This document shows, piece after piece, positions 5,723 through 60,893 of a stretch of 64,000 nt of DNA (position 1 is the stretch's first letter; every line of letters starts with the position of its first letter). The notes under the pieces were generated by a model. The model was not told where the DNA came from and did not search any database. It was given only the letters and a program-made list of their open reading frames with translations. The translations under genes were made by a program, and so were the position numbers. The stretch lies in NCBI GenBank assembly GCA_963514005.1, contig OY740792.1, forward strand, positions 67,394,001 to 67,458,000, in the 5' to 3' direction. This DNA is from Raja brachyura. Lineage: Eukaryota.

Positions 5723-8125
5723 GTGAAAGATATGCAAAAAAGTATTGGTGATAAGGAAAGCAGGCATTGTAAGCTGTTGAAAGCAGGCCATTGTAAGCAT
5801 GTAACCCCTGCTCTTTCACACCCACATCACAGCCCCCATACCCCCCCACCCCCTGACCACCCTCCACCCCCCCACCACACAACGCTCCGTCCTCAGTCCA
5901 CTCACCTGCCTTCCTCTAGCCACAACCCCCATCCCTGCCGTGTGTTCACCATCCCCCCGGACCTCCCCCTCTCCGACACCGAAAGGTCGGTCCTCAGCAG
6001 AGGTCTTACCTTTGTCCCCCTCCGTCCCCACCTCAATGAGTTCCGTGCCCACCACGACTTGGAGCTTTTCTACCGTCGCCTCTGCCTCACAGCGTTTTTC
6101 CACGGGAACAAGTCCTCGCCCCCCACTGATGATCCCTTTTCCTGTCTCCCACGTACCCCCTCCTCGTGGACCCCCCCTCGTGGCCCTCCAGCTTTAGAAC
6201 TATTTATACAAAACTGCCGTCGGGACATCAACCGCCTCGACTTCTCCACTCCCCTGTCTCACTCCAATCTCTCCCCCTCCGAACGTACTGCCATCGACTC
6301 ACTCCGCAACAACCCAGACTGGGTTATCAAACCCGCCGACAAGGGAGGTGCCATGGTAGTCTGGCGCGTCGATCTCTACAAAGCAGAGGCCACGCGCCAA
6401 CTCTCGGACACCTCCTCCTACTTACCCCTGGACCATGACCCCACTGACGAGCACCAGGCCACCATCTCGAGCACCATAACTGACTTCATTAACTCCGGCT
6501 CCCTACCCCCCCGAGCCTCCAACCTCATCGTTTCCCAGCCCCGCACAGCCCGATTTTACCTTCTCCCCAAAATCCACAAACCCGACTGCCCCGGCAGACC
6601 CATTGTCTCTGCCTGTTCGTGCCCCACCGAACACATTTCCACATACCTTGACTCCATCCTATCCCCCTTTGTTAAATCCCTCCCCACCTATGTTCAAGAC
6701 ACCTCAGACACTCTCCGTCGGCTCCGCACATTCCGTTGTCCAGGCCCCCATCCTCTCATCTTCACCATGGACGTCCAGTCACTATACACCTGCATCCCCC
6801 ACCAGGATGGTCTCAAAGCCCTCCGGTACTTCCTCGACCAGAGGAGCAACCCATACCCATCCACTGACACCCTCCTCCGCCTAGCGGAGTTGGTCCTTAC
6901 CCTAAACAACTTCTCTTTTGACTCCTCCCATTTCCTCCAAACACAAGGCGTAGCTATGGGCACACGCATGGGCCCTAGCTACGCCTGCCTCTTTGTCGGG
7001 TACGTCGAACAATCTTTGTTCTCGACGTACCAGGGCCCCACCCCCGACCTTTACCTCCGTTACATTGACGACTGCTTTGGTGTCACCTCCTGCACCCATG
7101 CAGAACTGACTGACTTTATCCATTTCACCACCAACTTCCATCCGGCACTCAAATATACTTGGACCATTTCCGACATTTCCCTACCATTCCTTGACCTCAC
7201 CATCTCTATTGCAGGCGACACACTCCTGACTGACATCCACTACAAACCAACTGACTCCCACAGCTACCTGGACTACTCTTCCTCCCACCCTGCTTCCTGT
7301 AAGGACTCCATCCCCTATTCCCAATTCCTCCGACTACGCCGCATCTGCTCCCAGGATGACGTGTTCCACACCAGGTCATCGCAAATGTCCTCGTTCTTCA
7401 GAGAACGGGGTTTCCCCTCCCCCACTATCGATGAGGCTCGCACCAGGGTCTCCTCCATACCCCGCAACACTGCCCTCTCTCCCCATTCCCCCACTCACAA
7501 CAAGGGCCGAGTCCCCCTGGTCCTCACCTTTCACCCCACCAGCCAGTGCATACAACAGATAGTCCTCCGCCAGTTTCGCCACCTCCAACGTGACCCCTCC
7601 ACTCGCCACATCTTCCCATCTCCCCCCCTATCTGCTTTCCGCAAAGACCGCTCCCTCCGCAACTCCCTCGTCAATTCTTCCCTTCCCGCCTGCTCCACTC
7701 CTTCCCCGGGCACTTTCCCTTGCAACCGCAAGAGATGCTACACTTGTTCTTTCACCTCCCCCATCAACTCCTTTCAGGGACCCAAGCAGTCATTCCAAGT
7801 CCGACAGAGGTTCACCTGCACCTCCTCCAACCTCGTCTACTGCATCCGTTGCTCCAGATGCCAGCTAATCTACATCGGTGAGACCAAGCGGAGGCTAGGC
7901 GATCGTTTCGCCGAACACCTCCGCTCGGTCCGCAATAACCAACCCGACCTCCCGGTGGCTCAGCACTTCAACTCCCCCTCCCACTCCGTATCCGACCTCT
8001 CGGTCCTGGGCCTCCTCCATGGCCAGAGTGAACAACACCGCAAGTTTGAGGAACAACATCTCATATTCCGCTTGGGGAGTCTGCATCCTCTGGGCTTAAA
8101 CATTGAATTTTCTCAATTCTGTTAA
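5723..8125 (+). CDS. Penelope RT/GIY-YIG endonuclease ORF (open for 800 codons; the N-terminal part reads out of the inverted pLTR)
   Basis: IKPADKGG, DVQSLYT, GVAMGTRMGP, RYIDD; C-terminal NLVYCIRC...IYIGETKR...RFAEH GIY-YIG. Confidence 0.92.
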   Translation: MKDMQKSIGDKESRHCKLLKAGHCKHVTPALSHPHHSPHTPPPPDHPPPPHHTTLRPQSTHLPSSSHNPHPCRVFTIPPDLPLSDTERSVLSRGLTFVPLRPHLNEFRAHHDLELFYRRLCLTAFFHGNKSSPPTDDPFSCLPRTPSSWTPPRGPPALELFIQNCRRDINRLDFSTPLSHSNLSPSERTAIDSLRNNPDWVIKPADKGGAMVVWRVDLYKAEATRQLSDTSSYLPLDHDPTDEHQATISSTITDFINSGSLPPRASNLIVSQPRTARFYLLPKIHKPDCPGRPIVSACSCPTEHISTYLDSILSPFVKSLPTYVQDTSDTLRRLRTFRCPGPHPLIFTMDVQSLYTCIPHQDGLKALRYFLDQRSNPYPSTDTLLRLAELVLTLNNFSFDSSHFLQTQGVAMGTRMGPSYACLFVGYVEQSLFSTYQGPTPDLYLRYIDDCFGVTSCTHAELTDFIHFTTNFHPALKYTWTISDISLPFLDLTISIAGDTLLTDIHYKPTDSHSYLDYSSSHPASCKDSIPYSQFLRLRRICSQDDVFHTRSSQMSSFFRERGFPSPTIDEARTRVSSIPRNTALSPHSPTHNKGRVPLVLTFHPTSQCIQQIVLRQFRHLQRDPSTRHIFPSPPLSAFRKDRSLRNSLVNSSLPACSTPSPGTFPCNRKRCYTCSFTSPINSFQGPKQSFQVRQRFTCTSSNLVYCIRCSRCQLIYIGETKRRLGDRFAEHLRSVRNNQPDLPVAQHFNSPSHSVSDLSVLGLLHGQSEQHRKFEEQHLIFRLGSLHPLGLNIEFSQFC

Positions 8126-20950: not shown

Positions 20951-21812
20951 AACATAGTAACATCGAAAATAGGTGTAGGAGGAGGCCCTTTGGCCCTTTG
21001 AGCCAGCACCGCCATTCATTGTGATCATGGCTGATCGTCCCCAATCAATAATCCGTGTCTGCCTTCTCCCCATATCCCTTGATTCCACTATCCCCTGGAG
21101 CTCTATCTAACCCTCTGTTAAATCCATCCAGTGAATTGGCCTCCACTGCCCTCTGTGGCAGGGAATTCCACAAATTCACAACTCTCTGGGTGAAAAGGTT
21201 TTTTCTCACCTCAATCTTAAATTGCCTCCCCTTTATTCTAAATACCTTTGGAACTCTCAGAAGGCGATCAATGTCGAGTCACTAAGATCAATTGGTTTTG
21301 AGCTCAAGGAAAGTAATTGAATAGAGAAGTAAGTTTCGGAAGCCATGCCACATCCTCTAGATTCTGTTTTTTATATTCTGCATATGTTGTTTGAGAGAGG
21401 AGGGTGTGGTTGTATGATAAGTATCAGTTTGTGGTCTCGTTGAAGAGGGGCAATTTATTACTGTGGAATAAGTTACCGGTTCTTCATAAATTATTTAAAT
21501 CTTTTTTTTTAATATGTTTATTTTATTAGAAGCAATTGTACAAGAATAAAGCAATCGGCATGAGAGTTATACAATTTTCGTAGGCTTCATTTTTAACATT
21601 TTATAAATTGATACATAAATCAAAAATATTAAATTGATACATAATCGAGAAAAAGAAAAAGAAAAGAATGAAGAAAAAGAAGAAAGATGCAAAAATGTTA
21701 AATGTTGTGAATTGTTATCTTTGACCTTTAAGATAGCATATTCTGTTTCTTGGGATTGCTCAGTCCATCTCAATTCCTGTCTTTGCTGTCCCTTCTTGAA
21801 ATAAACAGGCGC

Positions 21813-21848
21813 CTATTGCAGATTTTCATAGTTTATGGAAACATTATC
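21813..21848 (-). CDS. Gene 1 exon 6 (terminal): DNVSINYENLQ* with ITIM; frame stays open after the TAG to TEYAIL
   Basis: Strong acceptor ttgttatttttgtgttgcag; phase 0 matches exon 5; ITIM INYENL at 21819-21836; TAG at 21813-21815. Confidence 0.72.
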   Translation of the reverse strand, partial: DNVSINYENLQ

Positions 21849-22929
21849 CTGCAACACAAAAATAACAAATAACAATAAGAACCACTTGCAAATATTAGTG
21901 TTACAAAGTTCATATCATAGTTATAGAGCACGGAAACAGGCCCATCGGCCCAACTAGTCCACGACGACCAAGACACCCCATCTAAGCTAGTCACACTTGC
22001 CCGCGGTTGGCACTAGTGCCTCTAAACCTTTTTGTGTCCATGTACCTGTCCAAATATATTTTTAAATGGTGTTGTAGTCCCCGCCTCAACTACGTCCTCC
22101 GGCAGCTCGTTCCATATACCCACCACCATCTGAGTGATAAAGTTGCCCCTCAGTTTTTTCCTCTCACATTGAACATATGCCTTCTATTTCTCAATTCCCT
22201 TGGCTAAAAAAACTCAGTGCATTCACCCACCTATTCCCATTATGATTTTATGCACTTCCATAAGACTTGGAAGTCCAAGCCTGCTCAACCTCTCCCTATA
22301 GCCCAGGCCCTCAAGTCCTGTCAACATCATTGTAAATCGTCTCTATAAACATTCCAGCTTATTGTTAGAATGATATTTTCTTCATTTTAGAATTGGAGAA
22401 GCGGAGGAATTTTAGAACTTTAGAACATTTTGGATTACAATAGAATGGAGATGAGAGAATTTATTGAGCCAGATGGTGGTGAATCTGTGGAATTCATTAG
22501 CGCAGTCAGTGGTAGAGGCCAAGACATTGGATAATTTTACACAAAAGTGTAAAATTACAGTGACAGGGTTTGCTGGCAAGGAACTGCAGATGCACTAGAC
22601 TTTCACTTTTTAGAGAAACAGTGCGGAAACATGCCCTTTGGCCCACCAAGTCCGCGCCGAACAGCGATTAACCCCTGCACTAGCACTATCCTACATACTA
22701 GTAATATGTTTTACAGAAGCTAATTTGGAAAATGAGATGAAACGGGAGCACCCGGAGAAAACCCACAAGTTCACATGGAGAACGTACGAACTCCATGGAG
22801 ACAACCTCTGTAGTCAGGATCGAGCCCGGCTCTCTGGCGCTGTGATGCAGCAACACTCCCACTGCGCCACCGTGCCGCTGAATGTCTTGTGTTACAGAGA
22901 CATAGAGAGAGATACAGTGTGGAAACAGG

Positions 22930-23745
22930 CCCTTCGGTCCAACTTGCCCACACCGGCCAACAATGTCCCAGCTACACTAGTCCCACTTGCCTGCGCTTGG
23001 TCCATAACCCTCCAAACCTGTCCTATCCATGTACCTGTCTGTTTCTCAAACCATGGGATAGTCCCAGCATCAACTACCTCCTCTGGCAGCTTGTTCCATA
23101 CACCCACTACCCTTTGTGTGTAAAAGATACCCCTCAGATTCCTATTAAATCTTTTCCCCTTCACCTAGAACCTTTGTCCTCCGGTCCTCGATTCCCCTAC
23201 TTTGGGCAAGAGACTCTGTGCATCTCCTGTATCTATTCCTCTCATGATTTTTTATACCTCTGTAAGATCTCCCATCATCCTCCTGTGCTCCATGGAATAG
23301 AGACCCAGCCTACTCAATCTCTCCCTATAGCTCACACCCTCTAGTCCTGGCAACATCCTCATAAATATTTTCTGAAACATTTCAAGCTTGACAATATTTT
23401 TCCGATAACATAGTGCCCAAAACTGAACACAATATTCTAAATGCGGTCTCACCAACGTCTTATACAACTACAATACTCTGACTGATGAAGGCCAAAGTGC
23501 CAAAGGCCTTTTCGACCACCTTATCTACCTACGACTCGACCTTCAAGGAACCATGGTCGAATCGCAGGCAGATCCCTCTGCTCTACAATATTACCCAGAG
23601 GCCTACCATTTACTGTGTAGGTAATGCCCTTGTTTGACGTCCCAAAATGCAACACCTCACACTTCTCTGTATTAAATTCCATCAACCATCTGTCCAATCC
23701 TGCTGCAATCGTTCACAACCATCTTCACTAACTGCAAAACCACAA
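22930..23745 (-). mobile_element. CR1 3' fragment in the last intron of gene 1
   Basis: YKTLVRPHLEYCVQFW and TQRVVGVWN remnants. Confidence 0.85.
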
Positions 23746-23851
23746 AGTCAATTACACCGAATAGTGCTGATGAATCTGTTGATATAAGCTGACAATTCCT
23801 CAGAGCATCGTGAACGCAACATAAGGGTAAATATCAAACTAAATTACTCAC

Positions 23852-23919
23852 CTCATTTACTGAGTTCTTTCGTTTTCTCATTCTTTGAATATCAACAGTT
23901 GTGTCATGGACAAATGATT
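23852..23919 (-). CDS. Gene 1 exon 5, cytoplasmic (ESFVHDTTVDIQRMRKRKNSVNE)
   Basis: Acceptor catatttttatag, donor GAG|gtgagt, 68 nt, phase 1 to 0, open frame. Confidence 0.72.
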
Positions 23920-24525
23920 CTATAAAAATATGAATATTTAGTGTACTTCAGAGATACAGGACAGAAACAGGCCCTTCAGCCCACCGAGTCTACGCTGACC
24001 ATCGATCACGCTAGTTCTACGTTATCCCACTTTCACATCCACTCCCTGCACACTAGGGGCAATTTACAGAGGGTCAATTAACCGGCAAACCCACACGTCT
24101 TTGGGATATGGGAGGAAAACAAAGCACTCTGAGGAAATCCACGTGGTCAAAGGGAGAACATGCAAATTCTACACAAACTCAGCACCCGTGGTCAGGATTC
24201 AAGAGAGAGTTAGATTTATTTCTTAGGGCTAAAGGAATCAAGGGATATGATGAAAAAGCAAGAACGGGTCACTGATTTTAGATGATCAGTCATGATCATA
24301 TTGAATGGCGGTGCTGGCTTGAAGGACTGACTGTACCTACTCCTGCACCTATGTTTCTCTGTTTCTAACTTGGATCCCTGGCGCTGTGGGGCACCAGCTC
24401 TACAAGCTGTTGCCCTCCTTTTGTTTAAATTATTTTAATCTCTCTGGGAACTAAAGACAATATTCACTTTTATATGCTCAGTTTTTGGTTAAATTACAAA
24501 ATAAAATGTACAATGTATACATTAC

Positions 24526-24627
24526 CTTTCCCTTTCTTCAATTTACTGTGGTAATGATACACAATCCAGACCCATATTGGTACTATTAGAATAAGACTCA
24601 GTCGAATGAAATAATACTTGCCGAATC
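24526..24627 (-). CDS. Gene 1 exon 4, transmembrane (RFGKYYFIRLSLILIVPIWVWIVYHYHSKLKKGK) with Arg near the N-terminal end of the TM
   Basis: Acceptor taattttcaag, donor AAG|gtaat, 102 nt, phase 1-1; hydrophobic run followed by a basic stop-transfer segment. Confidence 0.8.
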
Positions 24628-26844
24628 CTTGAAAATTACAATTGAAATATGAATCAAAATAATGCTACAATGAATAACAATATAATAATGACTCTTGCAT
24701 GTTACATTACATTAAATAATTTAAATGCGCTGTTACATGAAACATTAATCATATATTTAGTTTAGTTTAATTTTGTTTAGAGACACAGAATAGAACCTGA
24801 TACTTAGACCCACAGGGTCCACGCTGACCATCGATCATCCGTTCACACCACTTCCATGTTATCACCCTTTCATATCCACTCTCTACACATTAGAGGCAAT
24901 GTGCAGGGACCAATTGAACTACAAACCTTTATGTGTTTTGGACATGCGAGAAAGCCAGAGCACCCGGAGGAAACCCACGCAGTCACGGCTAAAGCATGCA
25001 AACTCCACACAGACGATTGAAACAGAAATATATTAAAATCTAATATTTCCGATGTATTGCTCTTGTGAAATATGTCAATAGGATTGTTTCTGGAATTCTC
25101 TGCCACAGAAGGTAGTTGAGGCCAGTTCATTGGCTATATTTAAGAGGGAGTTAGATGTGGCCCTAGTGGCTAGAGGGATCAGGGGGTATGGAGAGAAGGC
25201 AGGTACGGGATACTGAGTTGGATGATCAGCCATGGTCATATTGAATGGCAGTTCAGGCTTGAAGGGCCGAATGGCCTACTCCTGCACCTATTTTCTATGT
25301 TTCTGCAGGAATTCCATGGTAAATATTACCAATATGTCTGTTAATATAGATATGTGTAGGAAAGAACTGCAGATTTTTGGTTTAAATCGAGGCAGACACA
25401 AACGGCTGGAGTAACTCAGCAGAACAGACAGCATCTCTGGAGAGAAGGAATGGGTGACGTTTCTGGTTGGGACTCTTCTTCAGACTGATGTCAGGGAAGT
25501 GGGCAGCACAGAGATAAAATGTAGTCAGAGACAGTAAGAGTGTTAGGAGAATTGGGAAGAGGGAGGGGATAGAGAGAGAGGGAAAGCAAGGGCTACTTGA
25601 AGTTACCGGTCAATGCGAATATAGATATTTATCCTTGATTATCACTTAAAATTCTAGTTCTATAAATATCTATCCTTAAAGAAATAAGACAGGCCTTTCA
25701 GAGGAGAAAATCTACATTATAGATTAACATTTTTATTATTCACTAAGTTCACTGTCACTAGGGTAAAGATAGGTTCCTTGCGTTGTAAATGACTGCAATT
25801 TACGTGTTGTAAATGGGGTCAAGGAAAGAGCATTCACGTCGCGGCCCTGTTTCCACCAAACTTTCCACCATCACGCACAACAAGCACAAGACAGACATCA
25901 TTGTATGGCTCTGGCTGAACAACTTCTAATCTTGTGTGTGGACTCGATAAGTGTTTATGAGAAGTGAAACATTTCACAAACCGCTAGGGTGTATTGGAAA
26001 ATCAACTGTATAACTGCTTCCTAAAAGCCTCTTAAACATCACTATCATATCTGCCTCCACTACCACCCCTGGCAGTGCATTCCCGGCACCCACCACCCTC
26101 TGTGTACAAAGACTCACCCTGCACATCTTCGTTAAACTTTGCCCCTTATAAACCAAAGAACAAGGAAAAATCATTATGGAAAATCAACAGTGAATCCTTA
26201 ATGTAATGGTCTGTCTTGGAACATCGATGTGTTGTGCACAGAATCTGCCAACCTCATAGAACATAGAACATAGAACATAGTACAGGCCCTTCAGCCTAAA
26301 ATATATCAGAGACGAACATGGAACCAAGTTAAACCAATCTTCTCTGCCTGCATGTGAATCATATCCCTCCATTCCCTGCATATTCATATGCCTATCGAAA
26401 CACCTCTTAAATGCCACTATCATATCAGCCTCCACCACCACTCCTGGCAGCATCTTCCATGCACTCACCACCCTCTGTGTAAAACAACTTGTCCCGTACA
26501 TCTCCTTTAAACGTTGTCTCTCTCACCTTGACGCTATGCCCTCTAGTCCTTGACATTTCCACTATCTAGCTTTCACATTGATTTGCTATAATCTGTTTAC
26601 TGGCTTCAGTAAATCATTTACTATGAAACCAAGATCTCCCAAGTCACATGGGATAAACGCTGCCTCCTGCCATTTACATAATATGCTTTTTTTTAAATTA
26701 AAGAAAAGAAAGAAAATGCTGGAAATATGCAGCAGGACAGGCAGCATATGTGGAAAGAGAAACAAAGTTAAAGGAAGAGGTCGGGGGCCAATCGTGAGAA
26801 CAGGGGGTGAAATAGATGATAGAGAGATGAGCAGAATTCCACAG

Positions 26845-27590
26845 GAAGGAACTGCAGATGCTGGTTTAAACCGAAGATAGACACAAAGTGCTGAAGTAAC
26901 TCCGTGGGACTGGCAGCATCTCTGGAGAGAAGGAATGGGTGACGTTTCAGGTCGAGACTCTTCTTCAGACTGAGAGTCACGGGAAAGGGAAATGAGAGAT
27001 ATAGATGATGATGTAGAAAGATATAGAACAAATGAATGAAAGATATGCAAAAAAGTAACGATGATAAAGGAAACAGGTAATTGTTAGCTGTAGCTAGGTG
27101 AGAAAAAATAAACTGTTGTGACTTGGATGGGGAGGGATAGAGAGAGAGGGGGAATGCAAGGGTTACTTGAAGTTAGAAAAATCAATATTCATATCAAGCT
27201 GCCCAAGCGAAATATGAGATGTTGTTCCTCCAATTTCCATTTAACCTCACTTTGACAATGGAGGAGGCCTAGGACAGAAAGGTCAGAGTGGGAATGAGAA
27301 GGAGAATTAAAGTGTTTAACAACTGGGAGATCAGGTAGGTCCAGGCGGACTGAGTGAAGGTGTTCAGCGAAACGATCGCCCAGTCTACATTTGGTCTCAC
27401 CGATGTATAAAGGTCCACATCTTGAACAACGGATACAGTAGGTGAGGTAGGGGGAGGTGCAAGTGAACCTCAGCCTCACCTGTTCGGACTACTGGGGACC
27501 CTGGATGGAGTTGAGGGAGGAGGTGTAGGGACAGGTGCTGCATCTCCTGTGGTTGCAGGAGAATATCTTCCAGGGTGACATTCCTGGGGG
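26845..27590 (-). mobile_element. Penelope 3' fragment (GIY-YIG end plus pLTR, hammerhead core at 26941-26968)
   Basis: ORF 27189..27479 is homologous to the C-terminus of 5723..8125; pLTR is similar to 8261-8477. Confidence 0.88.
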
Positions 27591-27714
27591 AAAAGTGGCA
27601 ATAATTTGAAAAGTAAATACATAAAGTGCTGTAGCAACTCAGCAGTCCAGTCAGCATCTACGAAGAAATGAAATACTGTAGGTGACGTTTTTCTTCAGAT
27701 AATTAGATAGAGAA

Positions 27715-29645
27715 TGACTGGGAAACACATTCTGTAAATGGCCTGGATGGTTTGGAGTTTGTTAAATGTGTGCAGGATAGTTTTTTGCAGCAATACATAG
27801 AGGTATCGACCAGAGAAGGGACAGTGCTGGACCTCCTGTTAGCAAATGAGGCAGGTCAGGTGACGGAGGTATGCGTTGGTGAGCACTTCGGGACCAGTGA
27901 TCACAATACCATTAGTTTCAATATAATTATGGAGACAGTCAGAACTGGACCTAGGGTTGAGATTTTTGATTGGAGAAAGGCTAACTTTGAGGGAATGCGT
28001 AATGATTTAAAAGGAGTGAATTGGGACATTTTGTTTCATGGGAAGGATGTAGAAGAGAAATGGAGGACATTTAAAGGGGAAATTGTAAGAGTACAGAATC
28101 TTTATGTCCCTGTTCGGTTGAAAGGAAATAGTAAAAATCGGAAAGAGCCATGGTTTTCAAGGGAAATTGGACACTTGGTTCGAAAAAAGAAAGATATCTA
28201 CAATAATTATGGATTTGTGCCTGGAAGGTCATGTTTGACAAACCTAGCAATTATAGACCAGTTAGTTTGACGTCAGTGGTGGGCAAATTAATGGAAAGGA
28301 TACTTAGAGATAATATATATAAGCATCTGGATAAACAGGGTCTGATCAAGAACAGTCAACATGGATTTGTGCCTGGAAGGTCATGTTTGACAAACCTTGA
28401 ATTTTTTGAAGAGGTTACTAGGGAAATTGATTAGGGTAAAGCAGTGGATGTTGTCTATATGGATTTCAGTAAGGCCTTTGACAAGGTTCCCCATGGAAGG
28501 TTGGTTAAAAGGTTCAATCTTTGGGTGTTAATGGTGGAGTAGCAAGATGGATTCAACAGTGGCTGAATGGGAAATGTCAGAGAGTAATGGTGGATGGCTG
28601 TTTGTCAGGGTGGAAGCCGGTGACCAGTGGGGTGCCTCAGGGATCTGCGTTGGGTCCACTGTTGTTTGTCATGTACATCAATGATCTAGATGATGGGGTG
28701 GAAAATTGGATAAGTAAGTATGCAGATGATACTAAAATAGATGGTGCTGTGGATAATGAAGTAGATTTTCAAAGTCTACAGAGAGATTTGGGACATTTGG
28801 AAGAATGGGATAAAAGATGGCAGATGGAGTTTAATGCTGATAAGTGTGAGGTGCTACATCTTGGCAGGACAAATCAAAATAGGACGTACATGGTAAATGG
28901 TAGGGAATTGAGGAATGCTGTGGAACAGAGGGATCTAGGAATAACTATGCATCGTTCCCTGAAGGTGGAATCGCATGTAGATAGGGTGGTAAAGAAAGCT
29001 TTTGGTGTGCTGGCATTTATAAATCAGAGCATTGAATATAGGAGTAGGGAAGTAATGTTAAAATTGTACAAGGCATTGGTGAGACCAATTCTGGAGTATG
29101 GTGTACAATTTTGGTCGCCTAATTATAGGAAGGATGTCAACAAAATAGAGAGAGTACAGAGGAGATGTACTGGAATGTTGCCTGGGTTCCAGCAACTAAG
29201 TAACAGAGAAAGGTTGAACAAGTTAGGACTTTATTCTTTGGAGAGCAGAAGGTTAAGGGGGGACTTGATTGAGGTCTTTAAAATGATGAAAGGGATAGAC
29301 AGAGTTGACCTGGATAAGCTTTTCCCATTGAGGGTAGGGAAGATTCAAACAAGAGGGCATGACATGAGAATTAAGGGACAGAAGTTTAGGGGTAACATGA
29401 GGGGGAATTTCTTTACTCAGAGAGTGGTGGCTGTGTGGAATGATCTTCCAGCAGAAGTGGAGGAGGCAGGATCGATTTTAACATTTAAAAGTAAAGTGGA
29501 TAGGTATATGGACGGGAAGGGAATGGAGGGGTATGGTCTGAGTGCAGGTAGATGGGACTAAGGGAAAATAAATGGTCGGCACGGACTGGAAGGGCCGAGA
29601 AGGCCTGTTTCCGTGCTGTAATTGTTATATGGTTATATGGTTATA
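27715..29645 (+). mobile_element. CR1 LINE, 5'-truncated, with internal deletion
   Basis: ORFs 27752..28270, 28231..28434 and 28521..29561 (YADD); tail (ttatatgg)n. Confidence 0.93.
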
Positions 29646-30817
29646 ATGTAGGGAAAGAAATGCAGATGCTGGTTTATACCAAAGATAAACCAATGAAAAC
29701 AAGAAAACTAACCTAAACTCATTCAAGTTAAACTAATCTCTGTTGCATATAATTCATATCCCTCTATTCCCTGCAAATCCATGTGCCTATCAAAACCGCT
29801 AACGTCTAACACCACAAATTACATCTACCTCCCCCACCACCCCTGGCAGCATGCTCCAGCTCACAACACCCTCAATAAAAACTTTAAATGCTCATATGGT
29901 CAGGCGGCATTTGTGAAGAGAAAATCAGGTTCAATGTTTCAGGTCGAAACCTGTGTCAGAACTCTTCTTAACTTTTTTGTTTTAGTTTAGTTGAGTTTAT
30001 TGTCACGTGGACTGAGATACAGCAAAAAAGCTTTTGTTTTCTCATCAAAATATACAATTTTTATTTTTTCCCACATTTTCTCCACTTCACTATTTTCTTG
30101 TTCATATATTATATCCACAATCAATTTTCCTATCTGTCTTTGTATCATTCGAATATTTAGCAACATCACAACGTTGCCTTCCTAAGAGTCCTAAGAGTCG
30201 TATACATTACATTTCATAATGCAATATTCAGTCTGAAGAAGGGTCCTGACCCGAAACATCACCTATCCATGTTCTCCAGAGATGCTGCCTGACGCGTTGA
30301 GTTCCTCCAGCACTTTGTGTCTATGCAGAATTCCAGCGTCTGAGATTCCAGTGTCTCTACTTTACTGACCAACTGTCTGTGTCATCACCAAATTTAGCAA
30401 CATCCCATCTCATGTGAGTCATAAAAAATCATTGATCGTACAGTGTGGAAACAGGCCCTTTGCGTACGGCGAAAAAGATGCCCCATCTACAGTAGTCCCA
30501 CCTACCTTCATTTGCCGCATATCCCCCTAAACGTATCCTATCCATGTACCTGTCCAAAAGTTTGTAATCCTTGTATAATCCTGCCTCAACTACCTCCTCT
30601 GGCAGCTCATTCCATATACCTACCACATTTGATAGGTATATGGAAATACCTATGCAAAGTTGCCCCACAGGTTCCGTTTGAATCTATTCCCCTCACCTTA
30701 AATCGCATGTCCCTGGTTCTTGATTCCCCTACTCTGGATAAAAAACTGTGCATTTACCCGATCTATTCCTCGTGATCTTATACACCTCTATACTATTTTT
30801 ATCAAATTCCTTCTGGG

Positions 30818-30848
<31 letters not shown>

Positions 30849-31669
30849 TTACATCTACAAGTTTCTCCTTTATCCACCTGCGTGTTACTTTTTCCCAATT
30901 CAAATATATTGGTCAAAAACGATTTTCCATACCTTAGTTATTTCTGCATGGCTTGCTATAAATTCTGTAATAATAGCTTCGAACATTTTATCAATGGCAG
31001 ACGTTAAGCTAATTAAGCTAATAGATTATTGGTTTCTGCACTTGTTTGAATTAAGGAGCAAATGTGCTATTTTCCCATCTAATGCATCGTTCCACCAATC
31101 TTGGGAATCTCGGAATATTAAAACCTGTACAGCAACTAGCCACAAGGTGCTGGAGTAACTCAGCGGGTCAGGCAGCATCCCTGGAGAGCACTGGAAGGAC
31201 ATGTTTCAGGTGGAAACCCTTCTTCAGACAACAAGAAGACGATTTCTGCATACCCCTGACCTGGAACGTCACCTATCCATGTTCTCCAGAGATGCTGCCT
31301 GACCCGCGGAGTTACTCCAGCAATTTGTGCCCCTTTTCCACTGTTCCATCATATTCCACTGTCCTTGTAAGGAAACCAAGTTGATTTAACAGCAGCACTA
31401 TAACCGGTGGGGCTCCGTGAGCGAAATTGAAATGGTAATAATTAAGTACTGTGTATAGTTTATGGAGATACAAGGAACTGCAGATGCTGGAATCATGAGC
31501 AAAACACACAGTGCTGGTGGAACTCAGTGTGTCAGGGAGCATCTGTGGGCTGAAGAAGGGTCCCGACCCGAAACGACGCATGTCCATTCCCTCCACAGAT
31601 ACTGAGTTCCTCCAGCACTTTGTGTCTTGCTCAAGATTCCAGCATCTGCAGTTTCTCGAGTATCAATGT

Positions 31670-31830
31670 TATACATCTTCAACTTTCACTATTATTTGAA
31701 AACATTTACCGTTAAGATACGGCGTAAGTGCTTTATTAGGCCAAGATATATATAATATATATATGATAAAGCACTTACGCCGTATTTTTGCGGTAAATGT
31801 TTCAAATAATAATGAAGAAAGATGTGTATA
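31670..31830. repeat. Palindromic AT-rich element (MITE-like) with a (TA)n centre
   Basis: attatttgaaaacatttaccg...tacggcgtaagtgctttat is mirrored by ataaagcacttacgccgta...cggtaaatgtttcaaataat. Confidence 0.7.
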
Positions 31831-32677
31831 TATGAGCTGATATCATCGATGTATACATACATATATATAATATATAAGGCAGCAAATATATATATATCGA
31901 TGCACAGTTGAACTGTACTTGAGTTGCTGCCTTACAGCGCCGTAGACGCGGGTTCAATCCTGACTACGGGTGTAGGATGTGCCGAGTTTGTGCGTTCTCC
32001 CCGTGACCTGCGTGAGTTTTTTTCACGGATGCTCCGGTTTCCTCCCGCACTCCAAAGACGTACAGGTTTGTAGGTTAATTGGCTTCGGTAAAATTGTAAA
32101 TTGTCCCTAATGCGCAGGATAGTGTTAGTGTAAAACGTGTTTTAGAAGAAGGGCCTCGACCCGAAACGTGGCATATCCTTCTCCACAAAGATGCTGCCTC
32201 ACCCGCTGAGTTCCTCCAGCATTTTGTTGTCTACCCAGTGTATGAGGTGATCGCTGATCCCCCGAAATCTGTAAGGTGTAAAAGTCTAAATGCATATTTG
32301 CAGCAGATATTGTACACATTGACTGATCTTATACACTTTTGATCGGGTTAATGAATTGCGTTCAACGTTCTCCAGAGATGCTACTTGACCCGTTGAGTTA
32401 CTCCAGCACTTTGTGTACTTTTTTGTAAACCAGCATCTGCAGTTCATTGTGGCTACGTTTAACAAATTTGTACATATGTACTATTAAACCTTGTACATGT
32501 GTAGAAAGGAACTGCAGATGCGAGTTTACACCGCAGATAGACACAAAATGTTGGAGTAACTCGGCAGTAACTGAGCCGCTGACCAGCACTCTGTGTGTCT
32601 TCAGTAACTGGAGGACGTCGGCTGTTCGGTAACTGGACGACGCCGGCCGGAATGACACATTCATTCAAGCCACTTAC

Positions 32678-32989
32678 TTGGGGTGGGAGGGAAAAGTTCG
32701 CTCACCGAGCCCGTCCCCGTGAGGTGCTGAACCAGGCAGGTGGCGACCGTGCCCGCCTCTAGCCGAGGGTCGATGAGCCGCAGCCGGGAGCTCACGTTGA
32801 AGCTTCCATCCCCGTTCTCCCTCAGCGGCCCCGCTTCTGTTTCATAGGACAAGTGGCCCACGACAGCCCAGGACATGTTCAGCTCCCTCGGGAAGAATCC
32901 GGCGGCCACACAAGTCAGAGTCAGCTTCTGGTTCTGCGTCTCTGCGCCTTCTACCCCGGGATCCAGGCTCAGGGAGATGTCAGGCTTCG
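32678..32989 (-). CDS. Gene 1 exon 3, C1-set Ig domain (AKPDISLS...LTLTCVAAGFFPRELNMSW...NGDGSFNVSSRL...ATCLVQH...)
   Basis: C1 hallmarks CxxxGFxP...W, NxDGSF and CxVxH; acceptor tttttctactttacgcag, donor CAA|gtaagt; 312 nt, phase 1-1. Confidence 0.93.
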
Positions 32990-35743
32990 CTGCGTAAAGT
33001 AGAAAAACAGCACGTTGTGAATCTCCCTGTCGCTCTCAGTCATGCATGAGCAACTGTGATAACACGGCACGCCGTGCACCGTGCTGAAGGAGCAACCAAG
33101 TCATTCAATGGATTAGTAGCGGAATAAAGACGAGCTGCAAATGCTGGTTTATACCAACGAAAGGCACAAGTACTGGAGTAACTCAGAGGGTCAGGCGGCA
33201 TCTCTGGAGAATATGGATAGGTGACGAGAGGTAGACACAAACTGCTGGAGTCACTCTTCATGGATGATATGTGATGTTTGGGGTCGGGTTACTTCTACAG
33301 ACTACATCTCTTCAGTCTGTGTCTCAAAATGCACAATAAGAGAGAAAAATACAGGAAGCGAATGAAATGGAATTGGAGACACGGGAATTGGAGATGCTGG
33401 AATGTTTAAGAATAAGGGGTCGGCCATTTAGAATGGAGATGAGGAAAAACATTTCACCCAGAGAGTTGTGAATCTGTGGAGTTCGCTGCCTCTGAAGGCA
33501 GTGGAGGCCAATTCTCTGGATGCTTTCAAGAGCGAGTTATAGAGCTCTTAAAGATGGTGGAGTCCCGGGATATGGGGAGAAGGCAGGGACGGGGTGCTGA
33601 TTGTGGATGGTCAGCCATGATCACAGTGAATCTGCGGAGGGGTTGGACAGGCGGCGATTCGGGTCGGGACCCTTCGGTCTGAATCGCCGCCAGTCCATTC
33701 CCTCCACAGATGCTGCCGGACCCGCCGAGTTCCTCCAGCACTCTGTGTATTTTAATGCCTTAAATGGAAGTGAATATCTTGTAGACGGCAAACTAAATCC
33801 AAGCAGACGATGGACATCTAAAACAGAACATATAAATATTCAGCCGGACAGGCCTGATTCGTGGCAAGAGAACGACGGTCCATGTTCTCCAGAGATGCTG
33901 CCTGACCCGATGAGTTACTCCAGCACTTTGCGTCTTTTTGTTAACCAGCACCTCCGGTTCCTTGTGTTTCAGGGTCAGAGTTTCGGCTGGAAGTCTTCAA
34001 TGTGAATCGGAAAATTCTCTCTCCCCCCACCCCACAGATACGGACCGACCTGTTGAGTAGCTCCAGCATTTTATTTATTTGCTTTTACAACTGGTACTGT
34101 CCGGGCCCAGGTTGTTTCTGCAACAGAAGATGGGTTCACGTTGCCAGAATTATTTACCAGAGTCTGAGCGAGTCGGGCTCCCTGTCGTCAGCCCGTGGGC
34201 GATGGTAGAGCGGCCGCATTTTGCATTGTAGCTGCCTCCCTTTAATGAAGCGTTAGGAATGTGTGCGACCATCCCCACTGTCCGCTGATGCGGTGGGGTG
34301 GGGGCCGCACACGCGTCCCAAGTTCCCCAACCAGAATGCTGCCTTAACCACCCAGTTCCCCAGCACTTTGTGTTTTGCTTAAATAAAACTCCAGCGCCTG
34401 CAGTCCCTGTCTCCACTTCTATTTCTTCCCCTTCCTGCATTTTATCTCTGTCTATTAATGTGCATGTTGAGGCACAAACCAACCCAGACCTGACACTAAA
34501 CATCACCTATCCATGATCTCCAGGGGTGCTGCCTGACCCACTGAGTGGTATAAACCAGTGTCTACATTTGACTGCTCCACTGTGAAATTCATCAAGGTCT
34601 GCCTTATTGGAAGAAGTTATCCGACGTCAGTTCATTGAAAATAGGTGCAGGAGTAGGCCATTCGGCCCTTCAATGTGATCATGGTTGATCATCCAACTCA
34701 ATATCCCGTACCTGCCTTCTCTCCATACCCCCTGATCCCTTTAGCCAAGAGAGAGGTTCTGTAATAACCCCTCTCGCAGTCTGTAGTAGGGCCCCGTGCC
34801 GAGACGTCACCTATCCATGATCTCCAGGGGTGATGCCCGCCCCGCTGTTACTCCAGCACTTTGATTCTGCCCTCTCTCACTGCTGCCCTCAATGATTCTG
34901 TCGCTTATATTTAGTTGTGTTCATTTCCACACATAAACATGATGCATCTGCCGCACATTTGGTTATCGCAGCCGGGAATTGTTTCAGGGCCAGTTATTCT
35001 ACTTCCCTGGAGCCCGGAAGCAAATGTTAAACCGAACTTGACAAAGACAAGAATCCTTCAGCCGGTCAGGTCAAGAGGGAATCTAGAGAAAACTGAGAGA
35101 AACAAAGAGGTTTTTGTTTCCACACTCCCTCCTTGTAAGGAAACCAAGATAATTAAATGCCGGCACTAGACCTATTGGGGATATAAACACTGCGACCGAG
35201 GTTGAGGTTGTGTTCATTATCTATGTTGTATCATTAGGGAGACAGGAGGAACTCCAGATGCGAGTTTTTTTTTTCCAAAGATGCACTCAAAGCGCTGGAG
35301 TAACTCAGCGAGTCAGGCAGCATCTCTGGAAATCAGGGATTTAAGTTCGGGACCTTTTGTCAGACTGGGTTGGTTTGTGCCGGAAAATGAGCATTAATAG
35401 AGGGAGATGAAATGCAGGAATGAAATGGAAGTAGAGACAGGGAACTGCAGGCGCTGCAGTCTTAAGCAAAACACAAAATGCTGGAGGAACACAGCGGTTA
35501 AGGCCGCATCTGTGGAGGGAATGGACAGGCGGCGTTTCGGGTTGGGGAACTTGGGATTCGTGTGATTCACCAACCCCATCGCATCAGATCTCGGGGTGGC
35601 TGTGGAGGCAGATACGATAGTAGAGTTGAAGAGACTTTTGGATAGACACATGAATATACAAGTTAGTTTAACCTGGCCTCATGGTCCGCACGAACATTGT
35701 GGGCTGAAGGGCCTATTCCTGTTGTATGTTCTATATTAATTAC

Positions 35744-36073
35744 CTTGGATGTGCAATGTTGTTCCATTTCCTATACACTTTTTCCAGATATCATCCATCA
35801 GTACCACACAATGGTAAGTGTCTGCATCGTGCACAGTCGCTTTCCGAATGACCAGCGAGTCCTTGGACACGGACAGGCGGTCGCTTGTCTTCAGAAAACT
35901 CCCGAACTTGTTGTCCCAGAGATCCGGGTTGTCTTTCGTCCGAATCCAGTATCGCCTCATTGAAACTTTCTCCCCCTCTCCGGGTAGCAGGGAGCAGTTG
36001 AACCTCGCTGTCTGCCCTCGGAGAAGCGTCAGAGCAGCAGGAGACTGGATCACCCTCACACCGACAGCGGACC
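35744..36073 (-). CDS. Gene 1 exon 2, germline-joined VJ-type V-set domain (GSAVGVRVIQSP...FNC...YW...DADTYHC...CIGNGTTLHIQ)
   Basis: B-strand Cys, C-strand Trp, DxxxYxC and J-like GxGTxL in one exon; acceptor cactttccgtgccag, donor AAG|gtaatt; 330 nt, phase 1-1. Confidence 0.94.
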
Positions 36074-36763
36074 CTGGCACGGAAAGTGAACATAGTTAAC
36101 GACGTCTTCCGAGTAACTCGAGTTTACTATCATGGGCACAAGGACAGTGAGGTCCAGGCGCAATTAAACCACCCTCGCTCACCTGTAACCACTTGTGCAG
36201 GAAGGAACTGCAGATGCTGATCTATATCGAAGACAATCACAAAGTGCTGGAGACGCTAGTAGCATCTCTGGAGAACATATCTGAAGAAAGGTCGCGACGC
36301 GAAACGTCACCTATCCATGTTCTCCACAGATGCTGCCTGACCCGCTGAGTTACTCCAGCACTGTGTTTTGTTCAAGATTCCAGCATCTACAGTTCCTTGT
36401 GTCGCTTATATTTAAGATAGACACAAGGTGCTGGAGTAACTCAGCGGGTCAGGCAGCAACTCTGGAGAAAAATGACGGGTGACGTTTCGGGTCGGAACCC
36501 TTCGCTTAAATATAGTCGTGTTAACTTTCTGACATTTCAATTTCTGCTTTTGTGTCTAAATTAAAAACTTGCTTGCAACAGCATCACGTGCACCTTCACT
36601 GAAACAAACACATATTCAAAAACAAATTGAACATAAATGACACATGACATTTCTAAAAGGCGGCAAAAGAGCAACAAACATTAGTGCAAAAGAGATAGAA
36701 AGAAACAAGTTATCGGAAGACAACGTGAACAGAGGTTGGCAAGAGTGAACATGAATGACTTAC

Positions 36764-36812
36764 CTGGGAGAAAGAGGCAGAGCGTGCAGATGAATTTTGC
36801 AAACGATGACAT
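36764..36812 (-). CDS. Gene 1 exon 1, signal peptide (MSSFAKFICTLCLFLP-G)
   Basis: ccaaaATG start, hydrophobic core, 49 nt ending in phase 1 at CAG|gtaagt; splices in frame to the V exon. Confidence 0.88.
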
Positions 36813-43802: not shown

Positions 43803-45597
43803 GAACAAGGACATGGCAGACCAATTGAAGGAACAAGGACATGGCAGACCAATTGAATAACTACTTTGGTTCTGTCTTCACTAAGGAAGACATAAATAAT
43901 CTGCCGGAAATAGCAGTGGAACGGGGGTCAAATAAGATGGAGGAACTGAGTGAAATCCAGGTTAGCCGGGAGGTGGTGTTGGGTAAATTGAACGGATTGA
44001 AGGCCGATAAATCCCCAGGGCCAGATAGTCTGCATCCCAGAGTACTCAAGGAGGTAGCCACAGAAATAGTGGATGCATTAGTGATAATTTTTCAAAATTC
44101 CTTAGATTCTGGAGTAGTTCCTGAGGATTGGAGGGTAGCTAATGTAACCCCACTTTTTAAAAAAGGAGGGAGAGAGAAAGCGGGGAATTACAGACCAGTT
44201 AGTCTAACATCGGTAGTGGGGAAACTGCTGGAGTCAGTTATTAAAGATGGGATAGCAGCGCATTTGGAAAGTGGTGAAATCATTGGACAAAGTCAGCATG
44301 GATTTACGAAAGGTAAATCATGTCTGACAAATCTGATAGAATTTTTCGAGGATGTAACTAGTAGAGTGGATAAGGGAGAACCAGTGGATGTGTTATATCT
44401 AGACTTTCAGAAGGCTTTCGACAAGGTCCCGCATAAGAGATTAGCATACAAACTTAAAGCACACGGTATTGGGGGTTCAGTATTGATGTGGATAGAGAAC
44501 TGGCTAGCAGACAGGAGGCAAAGGGTAGGAGTAAACGGGTCCTTTTCAGAATGGCAGGCAGTGACTAGTGGGGTGCCGCAAGGCTCAGTGCTGGGACCCC
44601 AGCTATTTACAATATATATTAATGATTTGGACGAGGGAATTCAATGCAACATCTCCAAATTTGCAGATGATACCAAGCTGGGGGGTATAGTTAGGTGTGA
44701 GGAGGATGCTTGGAGGCTGCAGGGTGATTTGGATAGGCTGAGTGAATGGGCAGATGCATGGCAGATGCAGTACAATGTGGATAAATGTGAGGTTATCCAC
44801 TTTGGTGGCAAAAACATGAGGGTAGACTATTATCTGAATGGTGGCAGATTAGGTAAGGGGGAGATGCAACGAGACCTGGGTGTCATGGTACACCAGTCAT
44901 TGAAAGTAGGCATGCAGGTGCAGCAGGCAGTGAAGAAAGCAAATGGTATGTTAGCATTCATAGCGAAAGGATTTGAGTATAGGAGCAGGGAGGTTCTACT
45001 GCAGTTGTACAGGGTTTTGGTGAGGCCACACCTGGAGTACTGCGTACAGTTTTGGTCTCCAAATCTGAGGAAAGACATCCTTGCCATAGAGGGGGTACAG
45101 AGAAGATTCACCAGACTGATTCCTGGGATGTCAGGACTTTCATATGAGGAAAGATTGGATAGACTCGGTTTGTACTCGATGGAATTTAGAAGATTGAGGG
45201 GGGATCTTATAGAAACCTACAAAATTCTTAAGGGGTTGGACAAGCTAGATGCTGGAAGATTGTTCCCGATGTTGGGGGAGTCCAGAACAAGGGGTCACAG
45301 TCTAAGGATAAGGGGGAATTCCTTTAGGACCGAAATGAGGAAAACATTCTTTACACAGAGAGTGGTGAGTCTCTGGAATTCTCTGCCACAGAAGGTAGTT
45401 GAGGCCAGTTCATTGGCTATATTTAAGAGGGCGTTAGATGTGGCACTTGTGGCTAAAGGGATCAGGGGGTATGGAGAGAAGGCAGGTACGGGATACTGAG
45501 TTGGATGATCAGCCATGATCACATTGAATGGCGGTGCAGGCTCGAAGGGCCGAATGGCCTACTCCTGCACCTATTTTCTATGTTTCTATGTTTCTAT
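43803..45597 (+). mobile_element. Young 5'-truncated CR1 with an uninterrupted 552-aa RT frame
   Basis: ORF 43841..45499; tail (tttctatg)n; tandemly duplicated ~28-bp 5' end; the empty site tattctacatgctcaaattc is present in DIRS copy A. Confidence 0.95.
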
Positions 45598-48989: not shown

Positions 48990-50746
48990 CATTACAGCCT
49001 TATTTTTAAATTGATTAAATTCATTTTTCTATCATCAATCTACACACAATATCCTAGAATGAAGAAGCAAAACCAGGTGTTTAGAAATTTATGCAAAGTA
49101 ATTGAAAATAAATAACTGAAATATCACATTTACGTAAGTATTCATACCCTTTACTGTGACACTCAAAATTAAGGTTAGGTTCATCCTGTTTCCATTGATT
49201 ATCCTTGAGATGTTTCTACAACTAGATTGGACTCCACCATCATTAAATTGATTGGACATGGTTTGGAAAGGCACACACCTGTCTATATAAGGTCCCACAG
49301 TTGACAGTGTATGTCAGAGCAAAAACCAAGCCATGAAGACGAAGGAATTGTCCATAGATCTCCAAGACAGGATTGTGTCGAGACACAGATCTGGGGAAGG
49401 GTTGTGAATTTATGGAATTCCCTGCTACAGAGGGCAGTGGAGGCCAAATCACTGGATGTATTTAAGAGAGTTAGATAGAGCTCTAGGGGCTAGTGGAGTC
49501 AAGGGATATGGGGAGAAAGCAGGCATGGGTTATTGATAGGGGATGATCAGCCATGATCACAATGAATGGCGGTGCTAGCTCGAAGCGCCGAACGGCCTCC
49601 TCCTGCACCTATTTTCTATGTTTCTAAAACAATTTCTGCAGCATTGCAGGTCCCGAAGAGCACAGTGGCCCCCGTCATTCTTAAATGAAAGAACATTGGA
49701 ACTACCAGGACTCTATGGAGCTGGACGCCCGGGGAGAAGGGCCTCGGTCATGGAGGTGACCAACTACCCAATGGTCTCTCTGACAGAGCTCCAGAGTTCC
49801 TCTGTGGAGGTGGGAGAACGTTCCAGAAGGACAACTATATCTGCAGCACTCCACCAATCAGGCCTTTAAGGTAGAGTGGCCAGACGGATGCCACTCCTCA
49901 GTGAAAGGCATATGACAGCCCTCTTGGAGTTTGCCAAAAGGCATGAGAAACAAGATTCTCTGGTCTGATGAAGCCGAGATTGAACTCTTTGGCCTGAATG
50001 CCAAGCGTCACGTCTGGAGGAAACCAGGCACTGCTCATCATATGAGCAATACCATACCTACGGTGAAGCATGGTGGTGGCAGCATCATGCTGTGGGGATG
50101 TTTTTCAGCAGCAGGAACTGGGAGACTAGTCAGGATCGAGGGAAAGATGAACGGAGCAAAGTACAGAGAGATCCTTGATGAAAACCTGCTCCAGAGCGTT
50201 CTGGATCTCAGACTGGGGCGAAGGTTCACCTTCCAACAGGACAACGACCCTAAACACACAGCCAAGACAACGCAGGAGTGGCTTTGTGACAAGTCTGTGA
50301 ATGTCCTTGAGTGGCCCAGCCAGAGCCCGGACTTGAACCCGATCGAACATCTCTGGAGGGACCTGAAAATAGCTCAGCATCGACGCTCCCCATCCAACCT
50401 GACAGAGCTTGAGAGGATCCGCAGAGAAGAATGGGAGAAATTACCTAAATGCAGGTGTGCCAAACTTGTAGCGTCATACCCAAGAAGACCTGAGGCTGTA
50501 ATCGTTGCCAAAGGTGCCTCAAGAAAGTACTTACTGAAGGGTCTGAATACTTATGTAAATGTGATATTTTAGTTATTTCTTTTTAATTACTTTGCAAAAA
50601 TTTCCAACACCTGTTTCCGCTTGTTTATTATGGGGTATTTTGTGCAGATTGATTATTTAAAAAAACATAATCCATTTAAAAATAAGGCTGTAATGTAACA
50701 AAATGTGGAAAAAGTGTAGCAGTCTGAATACTTTCTGAATGCACTG
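48990..50746 (+). mobile_element. Tc1 (DD34E) DNA transposon, defective; CR1 3' fragment inserted at about 49400-49626
   Basis: WSDE, QQDND and SPDLNPIE with 34 residues between D and E; long inverted repeats (about 48990-49150 and 50540-50746); right end ...cactg|TA; left outer end missing. Confidence 0.93.
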
Positions 50747-60629: not shown

Positions 60630-60893
60630 TCGAGAAGACCGCTCGAGTCTGTTTTCTCATCCACTTATGCCACATTGCGCAGATGTACTGATTCTGTTGC
60701 TCATATTCTTTCAGATGGTGGGTCACGTTGAAATAGCCATTGCTTTCTCTCATGATCATTTCACTGTACTTGTTTAAATCGTTCCCCGATTTGTCCTTCC
60801 ACTCCACTGTTGGGGCAGGATACCACCCTGACGACTGGCAAGAGAGCATGCCCTTTTCGGAATTCCAGGATACTTTGATAAGATCGGTAGCAG
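60630..60893 (-). CDS. Gene 2 constant-type Ig exon, B7/butyrophilin-like (LSCQSSGWYPAPTVEWKD...YICAMWH)
   Basis: CxSxGWYPxPxVxWxD signature; acceptor ttcttttcttggcag, donor CGA|gtaagt; 264 nt, phase 1-1. Confidence 0.9.

Follow-up and report, generated by a model that had tools for sequence, protein, structure and literature searches.

Gene Structure

This report concerns a gene for an antigen receptor-like protein in a 64,000-nt stretch of DNA from Raja brachyura (assembly GCA_963514005.1, contig OY740792.1, positions 67,394,001 to 67,458,000 of the forward strand). The whole stretch is referred to as the window, and all positions are counted from its first letter. On its minus strand, the window carries six exons that encode a leader, a variable-joining (VJ) domain, a single C1-set domain, a transmembrane (TM) segment, and a short cytoplasmic tail, followed by untranslated remnants of a longer tail:

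36764..36812, minus strand: exon 1, the start of a split hydrophobic leader (MS...LFLP), 16 codons and 1 nt long, with donor GTAAGT.
35744..36073, minus strand: exon 2, the end of the leader and the germline-joined VJ domain (Pfam V-set).
32678..32989, minus strand: exon 3, the single C1-set domain (LTCVAAGFFP...SW...TCLVQH; Pfam C1-set).
24526..24627, minus strand: exon 4, a connecting peptide and TM segment of the family's inhibitory TM type (tblastn 2e-7).
23852..23919, minus strand: exon 5, a membrane-proximal cytoplasmic segment (SFVHD...NSVNE), colinear with DSSIHDKNVD...DSVNE in the orthologues.
21813..21848, minus strand: translated part of exon 6, DNVSINYENLQ, then TAG at 21815-21813.
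21711..21812, minus strand: post-stop remnant of exon 6, in the same frame, encoding APVYFKKGQQRQELRWTEQSQETEYAILKVKDNN including the family motif TEYA(V/I)L.
21513..21710, minus strand: tail insertion of 198 bp, AT-rich, separating KDNN from YEEPV.
21387..21494, minus strand: distal tail remnant, IIYEEPVTYSTV...TYHTTTPSSLKQ, out of frame (tblastn 2e-6 to 7e-5).

The exon coordinates proposed in a preliminary description of this DNA are confirmed, with a coding sequence of 897 nt that encodes 298 residues and ends in a single terminal stop. All ten splice sites are of the GT/AG type, and the cumulative phases are 1, 1, 1, 1, and 0. The intron donors (in order GTAAGT, GTAATT, GTAAGT, GTAATG, and GTGAGT) are near consensus, and each of the acceptors (CAG, CAG, AAG, TAG, and CAG) is preceded by a pyrimidine-rich tract. 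The codons split at the junctions specify Gly, Ala, Arg, and Glu; two of these residues, Ala and Glu, agree with the orthologues. The start ATG at 36812 is preceded by an upstream in-frame stop, and the leader resembles those of Hypanus and Mobula (MS..., ...LFLP, AVG).

Pfam and comparison with other species bear out the same model. When nine orthologous proteins were searched against the 64-kb window by tblastn, their segments mapped onto the six exons and nowhere else, with E-values of 2.7e-37 for the V exon, 5e-34 for C1, 2e-7 for TM, 0.08 for exon 5, and 1e-8 for exon 6. Fragment alignment shows that the exon junctions coincide between the window gene and its orthologues. Paralogous copies of the receptor exons were not found elsewhere within the 64-kb window. 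Database searches and structure predictions were run exon by exon, not on the joined 298-residue product. Judged from these sequence matches, which go far beyond chance, the locus is a genuine non-rearranging VJ-C1 receptor gene. The preliminary description had also called the gene complete. This claim does not hold: the terminal stop is premature relative to every full-length orthologue and precedes the conserved family tail, and the tail is broken again further downstream.

V and C1 Domains

Exon 2 encodes a V domain of 109 residues with Cys26, Trp42, the motif DADTYHC (Cys88), and a J-like strand, IGNGTTLHIQ. The exon matches Pfam V-set with an E-value of 1e-7 and the Pristis protein P0001 with 65% identity (4e-33, phmmer). 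The J-like GNGTTLHIQ lies within the V exon, so that V and J are not separate in the germline as they are in T-cell receptor (TCR) and immunoglobulin (Ig) light-chain genes. No canonical heptamer or nonamer of a recombination signal sequence occurs inside or beside this exon. The idea of a non-rearranging receptor with V and J in one exon is thereby upheld: the J-like strand is germline-joined, free of recombination signals, and followed by one C1 domain, a TM segment, and a short tail. An AlphaFold model of the V domain (pLDDT 86) found as its nearest Foldseek matches shark IgNAR V, TCR V-alpha, CD79b, NKp30, and light-chain V, with NKp30 only at rank 16 among the structural neighbors. The V exon alone matches TCR V-alpha and IgNAR V, not SIRP V.

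The V domain also contains a third, unpaired Cys in the loop that corresponds to complementarity-determining region 3 (CDR3), just before the J-like motif (WKKCIGNGT, region 35775-35777). The alignment shows this residue in no orthologue. It could form an interchain disulfide.

Exon 3 encodes a domain of 103 residues that matches Pfam C1-set with an E-value of 5.9e-13. Its sequence matches in the PDB are UrIg2, IgH constant domains, and SIRP, and the nearest Foldseek neighbors of its model (pLDDT 81) are the C domain of B7-H6, the membrane-proximal domains of MHC class II, and UrIg2. In a maximum-likelihood tree of C1 domains, the window domain falls inside the batoid clade with support of 100/100, on a long terminal branch (0.58-0.71) comparable to that of Narcine. 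The corresponding V tree is unresolved. No second C1 exon was found in the window; in Hypanus and Mobula, which have two C1 domains, tblastn places the second one on exon 3 as well.

An Elasmobranch Receptor Family

When the V exon was used as a phmmer query against 1.84 billion representatives, four matches were specific, with E-values of 4e-33 to 9e-17; generic Ig proteins ranked far behind. All four are elasmobranch proteins of 290-436 residues with the order leader, VJ, C1, TM, and tail. Word-index searches added further species, so that NCBI gene models now provide colinear homologues from at least 14 elasmobranchs. The shark genera with members are Scyliorhinus, Mustelus, Cetorhinus, Stegostoma, Hemiscyllium, Heterodontus, and Heptranchias; the batoid genera are Pristis, Hypanus, Hemitrygon, Mobula (two species), and Narcine. 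Examples are XP_051870356 (Pristis pectinata), XP_038658211 (Scyliorhinus canicula), and XP_059824346 (Hypanus sabinus).

These proteins and the window gene are colinear exon by exon, with identities of 50-65% in V and 46-63% in C1. They share the J-like GxGT followed by (Q/R)AKP, the type of TM exon, and tail sequence even past the window's stop codon. The window gene departs from the family by a TAG at the first ITIM (immunoreceptor tyrosine-based inhibitory motif) tyrosine, a tail disrupted by an insertion and a frameshift, a Leu-to-Arg exchange in the TM segment, the loss of two Cys in the TM region, and the extra Cys in the CDR3-like loop. From this colinearity, the window gene is a member of an elasmobranch family of SIRP-like VJ-C1 receptors, not an orphan.

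The automatic names of the NCBI models are inconsistent and include "signal-regulatory protein beta-1-like", "SHPS-1-like", [quoted passage not shown], "immunoglobulin kappa light chain-like", "T cell receptor beta chain-like", "Ig heavy chain Mem5-like", and "uncharacterized". A search of the literature found no dedicated paper on this elasmobranch VJ-C1 family. The earlier suggestion of an uncharacterized chondrichthyan family is therefore right insofar as this is a cartilaginous-fish family without a dedicated paper in that search, but its members were already present as gene models in at least 14 elasmobranchs.

The family varies in domain content and in its membrane anchor. Stingrays and mantas carry a tandem duplicate of C1 (P0041 from Hypanus and P0042 from Mobula birostris). 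Soluble forms are predicted from isoforms of Heterodontus (P0046) and Heptranchias (P0049) in which the phase-symmetric TM exon is skipped without a change of frame. Three batoid proteins (P0040 from Pristis, P0048 from Mobula hypostoma, and P0050 from Hemitrygon) are nearly identical from V to C1 to long-tailed neighbors, and continue after C1 with a different TM segment that contains an Arg (for example IPVIVRHFIIVVG) and with a short tail. In trees, each of these three groups with the long-tailed form of its own lineage. The Arg-containing, short-tailed form was not seen among the shark models. Since these short-tailed partners share the ectodomain of the long-tailed form, the family appears to behave as paired inhibitory and activating receptors, as do SIRP-alpha and SIRP-beta.

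Outside the cartilaginous fish, a caecilian protein named "SHPS-1-like" (P0026) shows colinearity with a catshark member that extends from the leader through the final tyrosine of the tail (26% identity, 5e-27). This colinearity suggests that the lineage is not confined to cartilaginous fish. When P0026 itself served as the query, the search found only P0026, and a profile search added elasmobranchs only.

A separate, multicopy cluster of VJ-C1 proteins occurs in Scyliorhinus torazame (P0014 and P0055-P0062; 237-415 residues, nine members at 90% identity). This cluster is auto-named Ig kappa light chain-like and was a weaker match of the V search.

Loss of the Canonical Tail

The cytoplasmic tail of full-length members contains, in order, ETL(H/Q)YA(S/P)V, TEYAVLKVKDKNN, xFYEEPV, and xYSTV, followed in sharks by TANY..TIYASLK; rays end the tail with TTTSFSL where sharks have TIYASLK. 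These sequences amount to four or five tyrosine motifs of the ITIM or ITSM (immunoreceptor tyrosine-based switch motif) type, namely, one or two ITIMs plus ITSM-like motifs. In the window gene, the alignment column of the first ITIM tyrosine is occupied by the TAG at 21815-21813: the window reads ENLQ(stop)APVYF, where Pristis has ENLQYASVHF and S. canicula has ETLHYAPVHV. The family motifs LxYAxV, TEYAVL, YEEPV, and VxYSTV are consequently not translated and survive in the window as interrupted remnants.

The reading frame remains open for 34 codons past the TAG, through TEYAIL, and this part of exon 6 keeps 14 of 17 conserved columns. The distal remnant, which tblastn matched with proteins from Hypanus, Mobula, Heptranchias, and Stegostoma, keeps 13 of 16. 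It is out of frame with the KDNN/KDLNN codons, a single nucleotide standing where the orthologues have two codons, and a TAA precedes it closely in its own frame. Between the two remnants lies the 198-bp insertion, which ends with AATAAA, eight bases, and nine A's; its flanks are AAAGATAACAAT and AAAGATTTAAATAAT. The insertion has no GT donor at its start and neither an AG nor a pyrimidine tract at its end. The repeat formed by its flanks is not significant by itself against shuffled sequences, and no second copy of the insertion was found in the window. Because of the poly(A) end with AATAAA and the absence of usable splice sites, we surmise that the 198 bp are probably a retroposed insertion into a terminal exon that was once continuous. 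However the insertion is read, the nonsense codon, the interruption, and the break in frame together mean that the canonical tail cannot be made. The structure of the gene, its place in the family, and this truncation are shown by the sequence data.

The preliminary description had assigned an ITIM tail to this gene. As it turns out, the conserved motifs all follow the TAG, and the motif that is translated, INYENL, fits the ITIM consensus (I/V/L/S)xYxx(I/V/L) only through an Asn-to-Tyr exchange (codon 21830-21828) that is specific to the window lineage. The orthologues carry N, S, or D at this column. INYENL also fits a motif of the pYxN type.

The TM exon (33 residues) is the most altered part of the gene, with changes in 6 of 19 conserved columns. 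A Leu at a conserved TM column is replaced by Arg, which is specific to the window, and both conserved Cys of the TM region are lost. The most hydrophobic 19-mer of the segment (YYFIRLSLILIVPIWVWIV) still includes the gained Arg.

Short-Tailed Receptor or Pseudogene

By analogy with SIRP-alpha-type receptors, the tail tyrosines of the full-length family form would be phosphorylated and would then recruit SH2 phosphatases. The TAG at the first ITIM tyrosine cuts the window copy off from this tail, and the insertion and the frameshift break what remains. With leader, V, C1, TM, and ten splice sites intact, the predicted product is a short-tailed receptor of 298 residues that could not give the canonical inhibitory signal of the family. 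This short form may serve as a decoy or a non-inhibitory receptor, or it may be of an activating type that couples to an adaptor through the new TM Arg. The tyrosine in the new C-terminal INYENLQ might be a docking site. On balance, we lean toward the view that the window gene is a recently tail-truncated, short-tailed receptor that is still made and used, either as a decoy or non-inhibitory receptor or coupled to an adaptor by way of the TM Arg. Here, we infer expression, signaling, and adaptor pairing of the window product.

This view can be compared with the pattern of change along the gene. We defined conserved columns as those shared by the other nine species with at most one exception, and counted changes for each species. 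In V, the window gene has changed 13% of these columns, typical species 0-9%, and Narcine 23%; in C1, the values are 19%, 3-14%, and 28%. The Narcine comparator is an uninterrupted predicted protein. The window gene has kept all canonical Cys and Trp residues and all four N-glycosylation sequons. Both lesions behind the TAG fall within the last ~210 of ~1090 functional nucleotides, an arrangement with a probability of ~0.04 under a uniform rate of lesions. If the tail was a single terminal exon, a stop within this exon would escape nonsense-mediated decay.

Several observations weigh against a receptor that is still in use. The untranslated tail remnants have changed in 19% of conserved columns, much as the translated part has. 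Since the remnants are as well conserved as the translated part, the truncation must be recent relative to the branch, and an intact upstream reading frame is therefore weak evidence of continued selection. Evidence for RNA was not obtained: six sequencing runs share 41-70% of words with the gene, and none of them is recorded as RNA. No protein from the window locus was found in a collection of 5.8 billion proteins; the missing entry would fit either annotation as a pseudogene or a genome that has not been annotated. The TAG is read from the assembled sequence. As to coupling with an adaptor, the gained Arg lies near the N-terminal end of the TM segment and could be a shifted flank, the Lys flank at the C-terminal end is replaced by YHYH, and the activating-type TM exon with Arg that occurs in other batoids was not found in the window.

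A young pseudogene, unlikely in our judgment, is the strongest of the alternatives considered. On this account, the gene is dispensable, perhaps because of a paralogue elsewhere in the genome, lesions in the tail were the first to accumulate, and no functional protein is made. The three lesions in the tail are consistent with this account, as are the long terminal branch, the absence of the locus from large protein collections and of RNA among the matching runs, and the state of the TM exon with its lost Cys pair and its six altered columns. The same account has to accommodate 861 nt upstream of exon 6 and ten splice sites without a single lesion. It also has to explain why the invariant residues of V and C1 and the glycosylation sequons are retained, why the ectodomain is no more degenerate than that of the intact Narcine orthologue, and why every lesion lies in the portion that is no longer translated, given the low probability of this arrangement under a uniform rate.

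We consider it improbable that the window gene encodes a complete inhibitory receptor in which INYENL is a working ITIM, its function having moved five residues upstream of the old tyrosine. The sequence I-N-Y-E-N-L does satisfy the consensus, and its hydrophobic flanks are already present in orthologues (LSNENL in Pristis), so that one Asn-to-Tyr exchange makes the motif; a TM Arg and a tail ITIM are, moreover, combined in known receptors such as KIR2DL4. Set against these points, no orthologue has this tyrosine, just four residues lie behind it, and Y-E-N fits the Grb2-type pYxN, so that the motif is not specific for inhibition. In addition, the family's four or five conserved motifs have all been lost.

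The idea that the TAG reflects a mistake in sequencing or assembly or an uncommon allele, or that its AG acts as a second splice acceptor and so drops 36 nt from the start of exon 6 without loss of frame, has very little to recommend it: the TAG is one base from TAY, the frame stays open behind it through TEYAIL, and TAG|GCG would be in frame with exon 5, but the 198-bp insertion lacking usable splice sites and the frame break before YEEPV preclude a full tail in any case, and the candidate internal acceptor has no pyrimidine tract.

Neighboring Features in the Window

Upstream of the receptor gene and on the same strand lies a B7/butyrophilin-like gene, represented by two features:

60529-60921, minus strand: IgC exon, Pfam C2-set_3 (butyrophilin type) 2.9e-14, best PDB match BTNL8 at 4.5e-9.
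61758-62192, minus strand: V-set open reading frame (ORF), a weak match at 0.005.

The location of a VJ-type receptor beside a gene of the B7 family recalls, by analogy, the linkage of NKp30 and B7H6. The window is rich in transposons, with ORFs at 28521-29561 (plus), 3068-4579 (minus), 43841-45499 (plus), 5723-8125 (plus), and 49931-50572 (plus). They include LINE-type reverse-transcriptase ORFs, one of which lies in intron 3 (8 kb) of the receptor gene, and a Tc1/mariner ORF for a DDE_3 transposase. A Penelope-like ORF has weak matches to reverse transcriptase and GIY-YIG domains that fall below the Pfam cut-offs.

Comparison with Known Receptor Systems

Interest in non-rearranging VJ-C1 genes stems from their relationship to the gene that was split by the RAG transposon and gave rise to antibodies and T-cell receptors. 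We compared a profile of the elasmobranch family with the PDB. Scored by the best single V-C1 stretch, Ig kappa light chain reaches 75 bits, UrIg2 60-66, and Ig lambda 47-60. Scored over whole chains, SIRP-alpha reaches 116 bits, as compared to 123-135 for UrIg2, Ig kappa light chain, and the top Ig chain, which consists of lambda V-C plus heavy-chain constant domains. The profile matches SIRP-alpha (2wng) across V and C1 with an E-value of 2e-32, and a feature search of the ESM Atlas places the catshark member nearest to SIRP clusters (0.96-0.97). By these sequence scores, Ig light chains, UrIg2, and SIRP-alpha appear to resemble the V-C1 unit to much the same degree, and no family stands out. 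Of the kinship with NKp30, SIRP, and VJ-C1 genes that had been suggested for the window gene, the single-C1 VJ receptor remains, but a specific affinity to NKp30 was not found. Membership in the NKp30 (NCR3) group was rejected because the window gene has a C1-set exon, whereas the V domain of NKp30 joins the stalk and TM segment without a C domain.

UrIg and UrIg2 are elasmobranch proteins as well, and share with the window gene a non-rearranging, single-exon VJ, a split leader, and C1-type domains that follow. UrIg2 (PDB 9dmx) is the first or second sequence match in the PDB. These proteins have at least three C1-type domains, in contrast to the single C1 exon of the window gene. UrIg is secreted and has three C domains, UrIg2 has nine to eleven, and neither has been described with an ITIM tail (PMC12227049).

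SIRP proteins resemble the elasmobranch family in that a VJ-type V is followed by C1-set domains and in that ITIM-tailed forms are paired with short-tailed forms with a charged TM segment. Unlike the window gene, they contain two C1 domains. A further relative in terms of architecture is PRARP. Fu et al. 2019 (J Immunol 202:1992) reportedly describe it as a non-rearranging VJ, C1, TM, and tail ITIM protein of bony fish, amphibians, reptiles, and birds, and it is said not to have been reported from cartilaginous fish. At the level of the family, the order VJ-C1-TM-ITIM is shared with PRARP, a comparison made by description only; in the window gene, the ITIM part of this likeness is limited to the window-specific motif. 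PRARP is cited as a joined-VJ gene in passages of PMC10751288 and PMC11599192. A literature search for SIRP in sharks or for PRARP returned nothing specific.

We suggest, as a doubtful proposal, that the elasmobranch family may be the cartilaginous-fish counterpart of the PRARP- and SIRP-type genes of tetrapods, and that the window copy may be an inhibitory receptor in the process of conversion to an activating one. If so, paired receptors built on an antigen receptor-like VJ-C1 unit would date to the ancestor of jawed vertebrates. The conversion would have proceeded by a nonsense codon at the ITIM tyrosine, a new TM Arg, and a new C-terminal tyrosine, whereas other batoids use a separate Arg-TM exon for the same end. 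A tetrapod origin is given for the SIRP family in a 2026 survey (PMC13262535); orthology of the elasmobranch family to either PRARP or SIRP would make this type of receptor older than that. Besides UrIg, UrIg2, and NKp30, sharks and rays have a conserved, ITIM-tailed VJ-C1 family with a single C1 domain and with Arg-TM partners, which now stands under misleading automatic names.

The window copy itself is a small, clean example of tail loss by an inhibitory receptor. A precedent is found among the activating killer cell Ig-like receptors: KIR2DS and KIR3DS derive from inhibitory receptors, with a premature stop, ITIM-coding remnants in the 3' region, and a charged residue in the TM segment. 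These receptors differ from the window gene in their unrelated type of Ig domain and in a mid-membrane Lys that pairs with DAP12.

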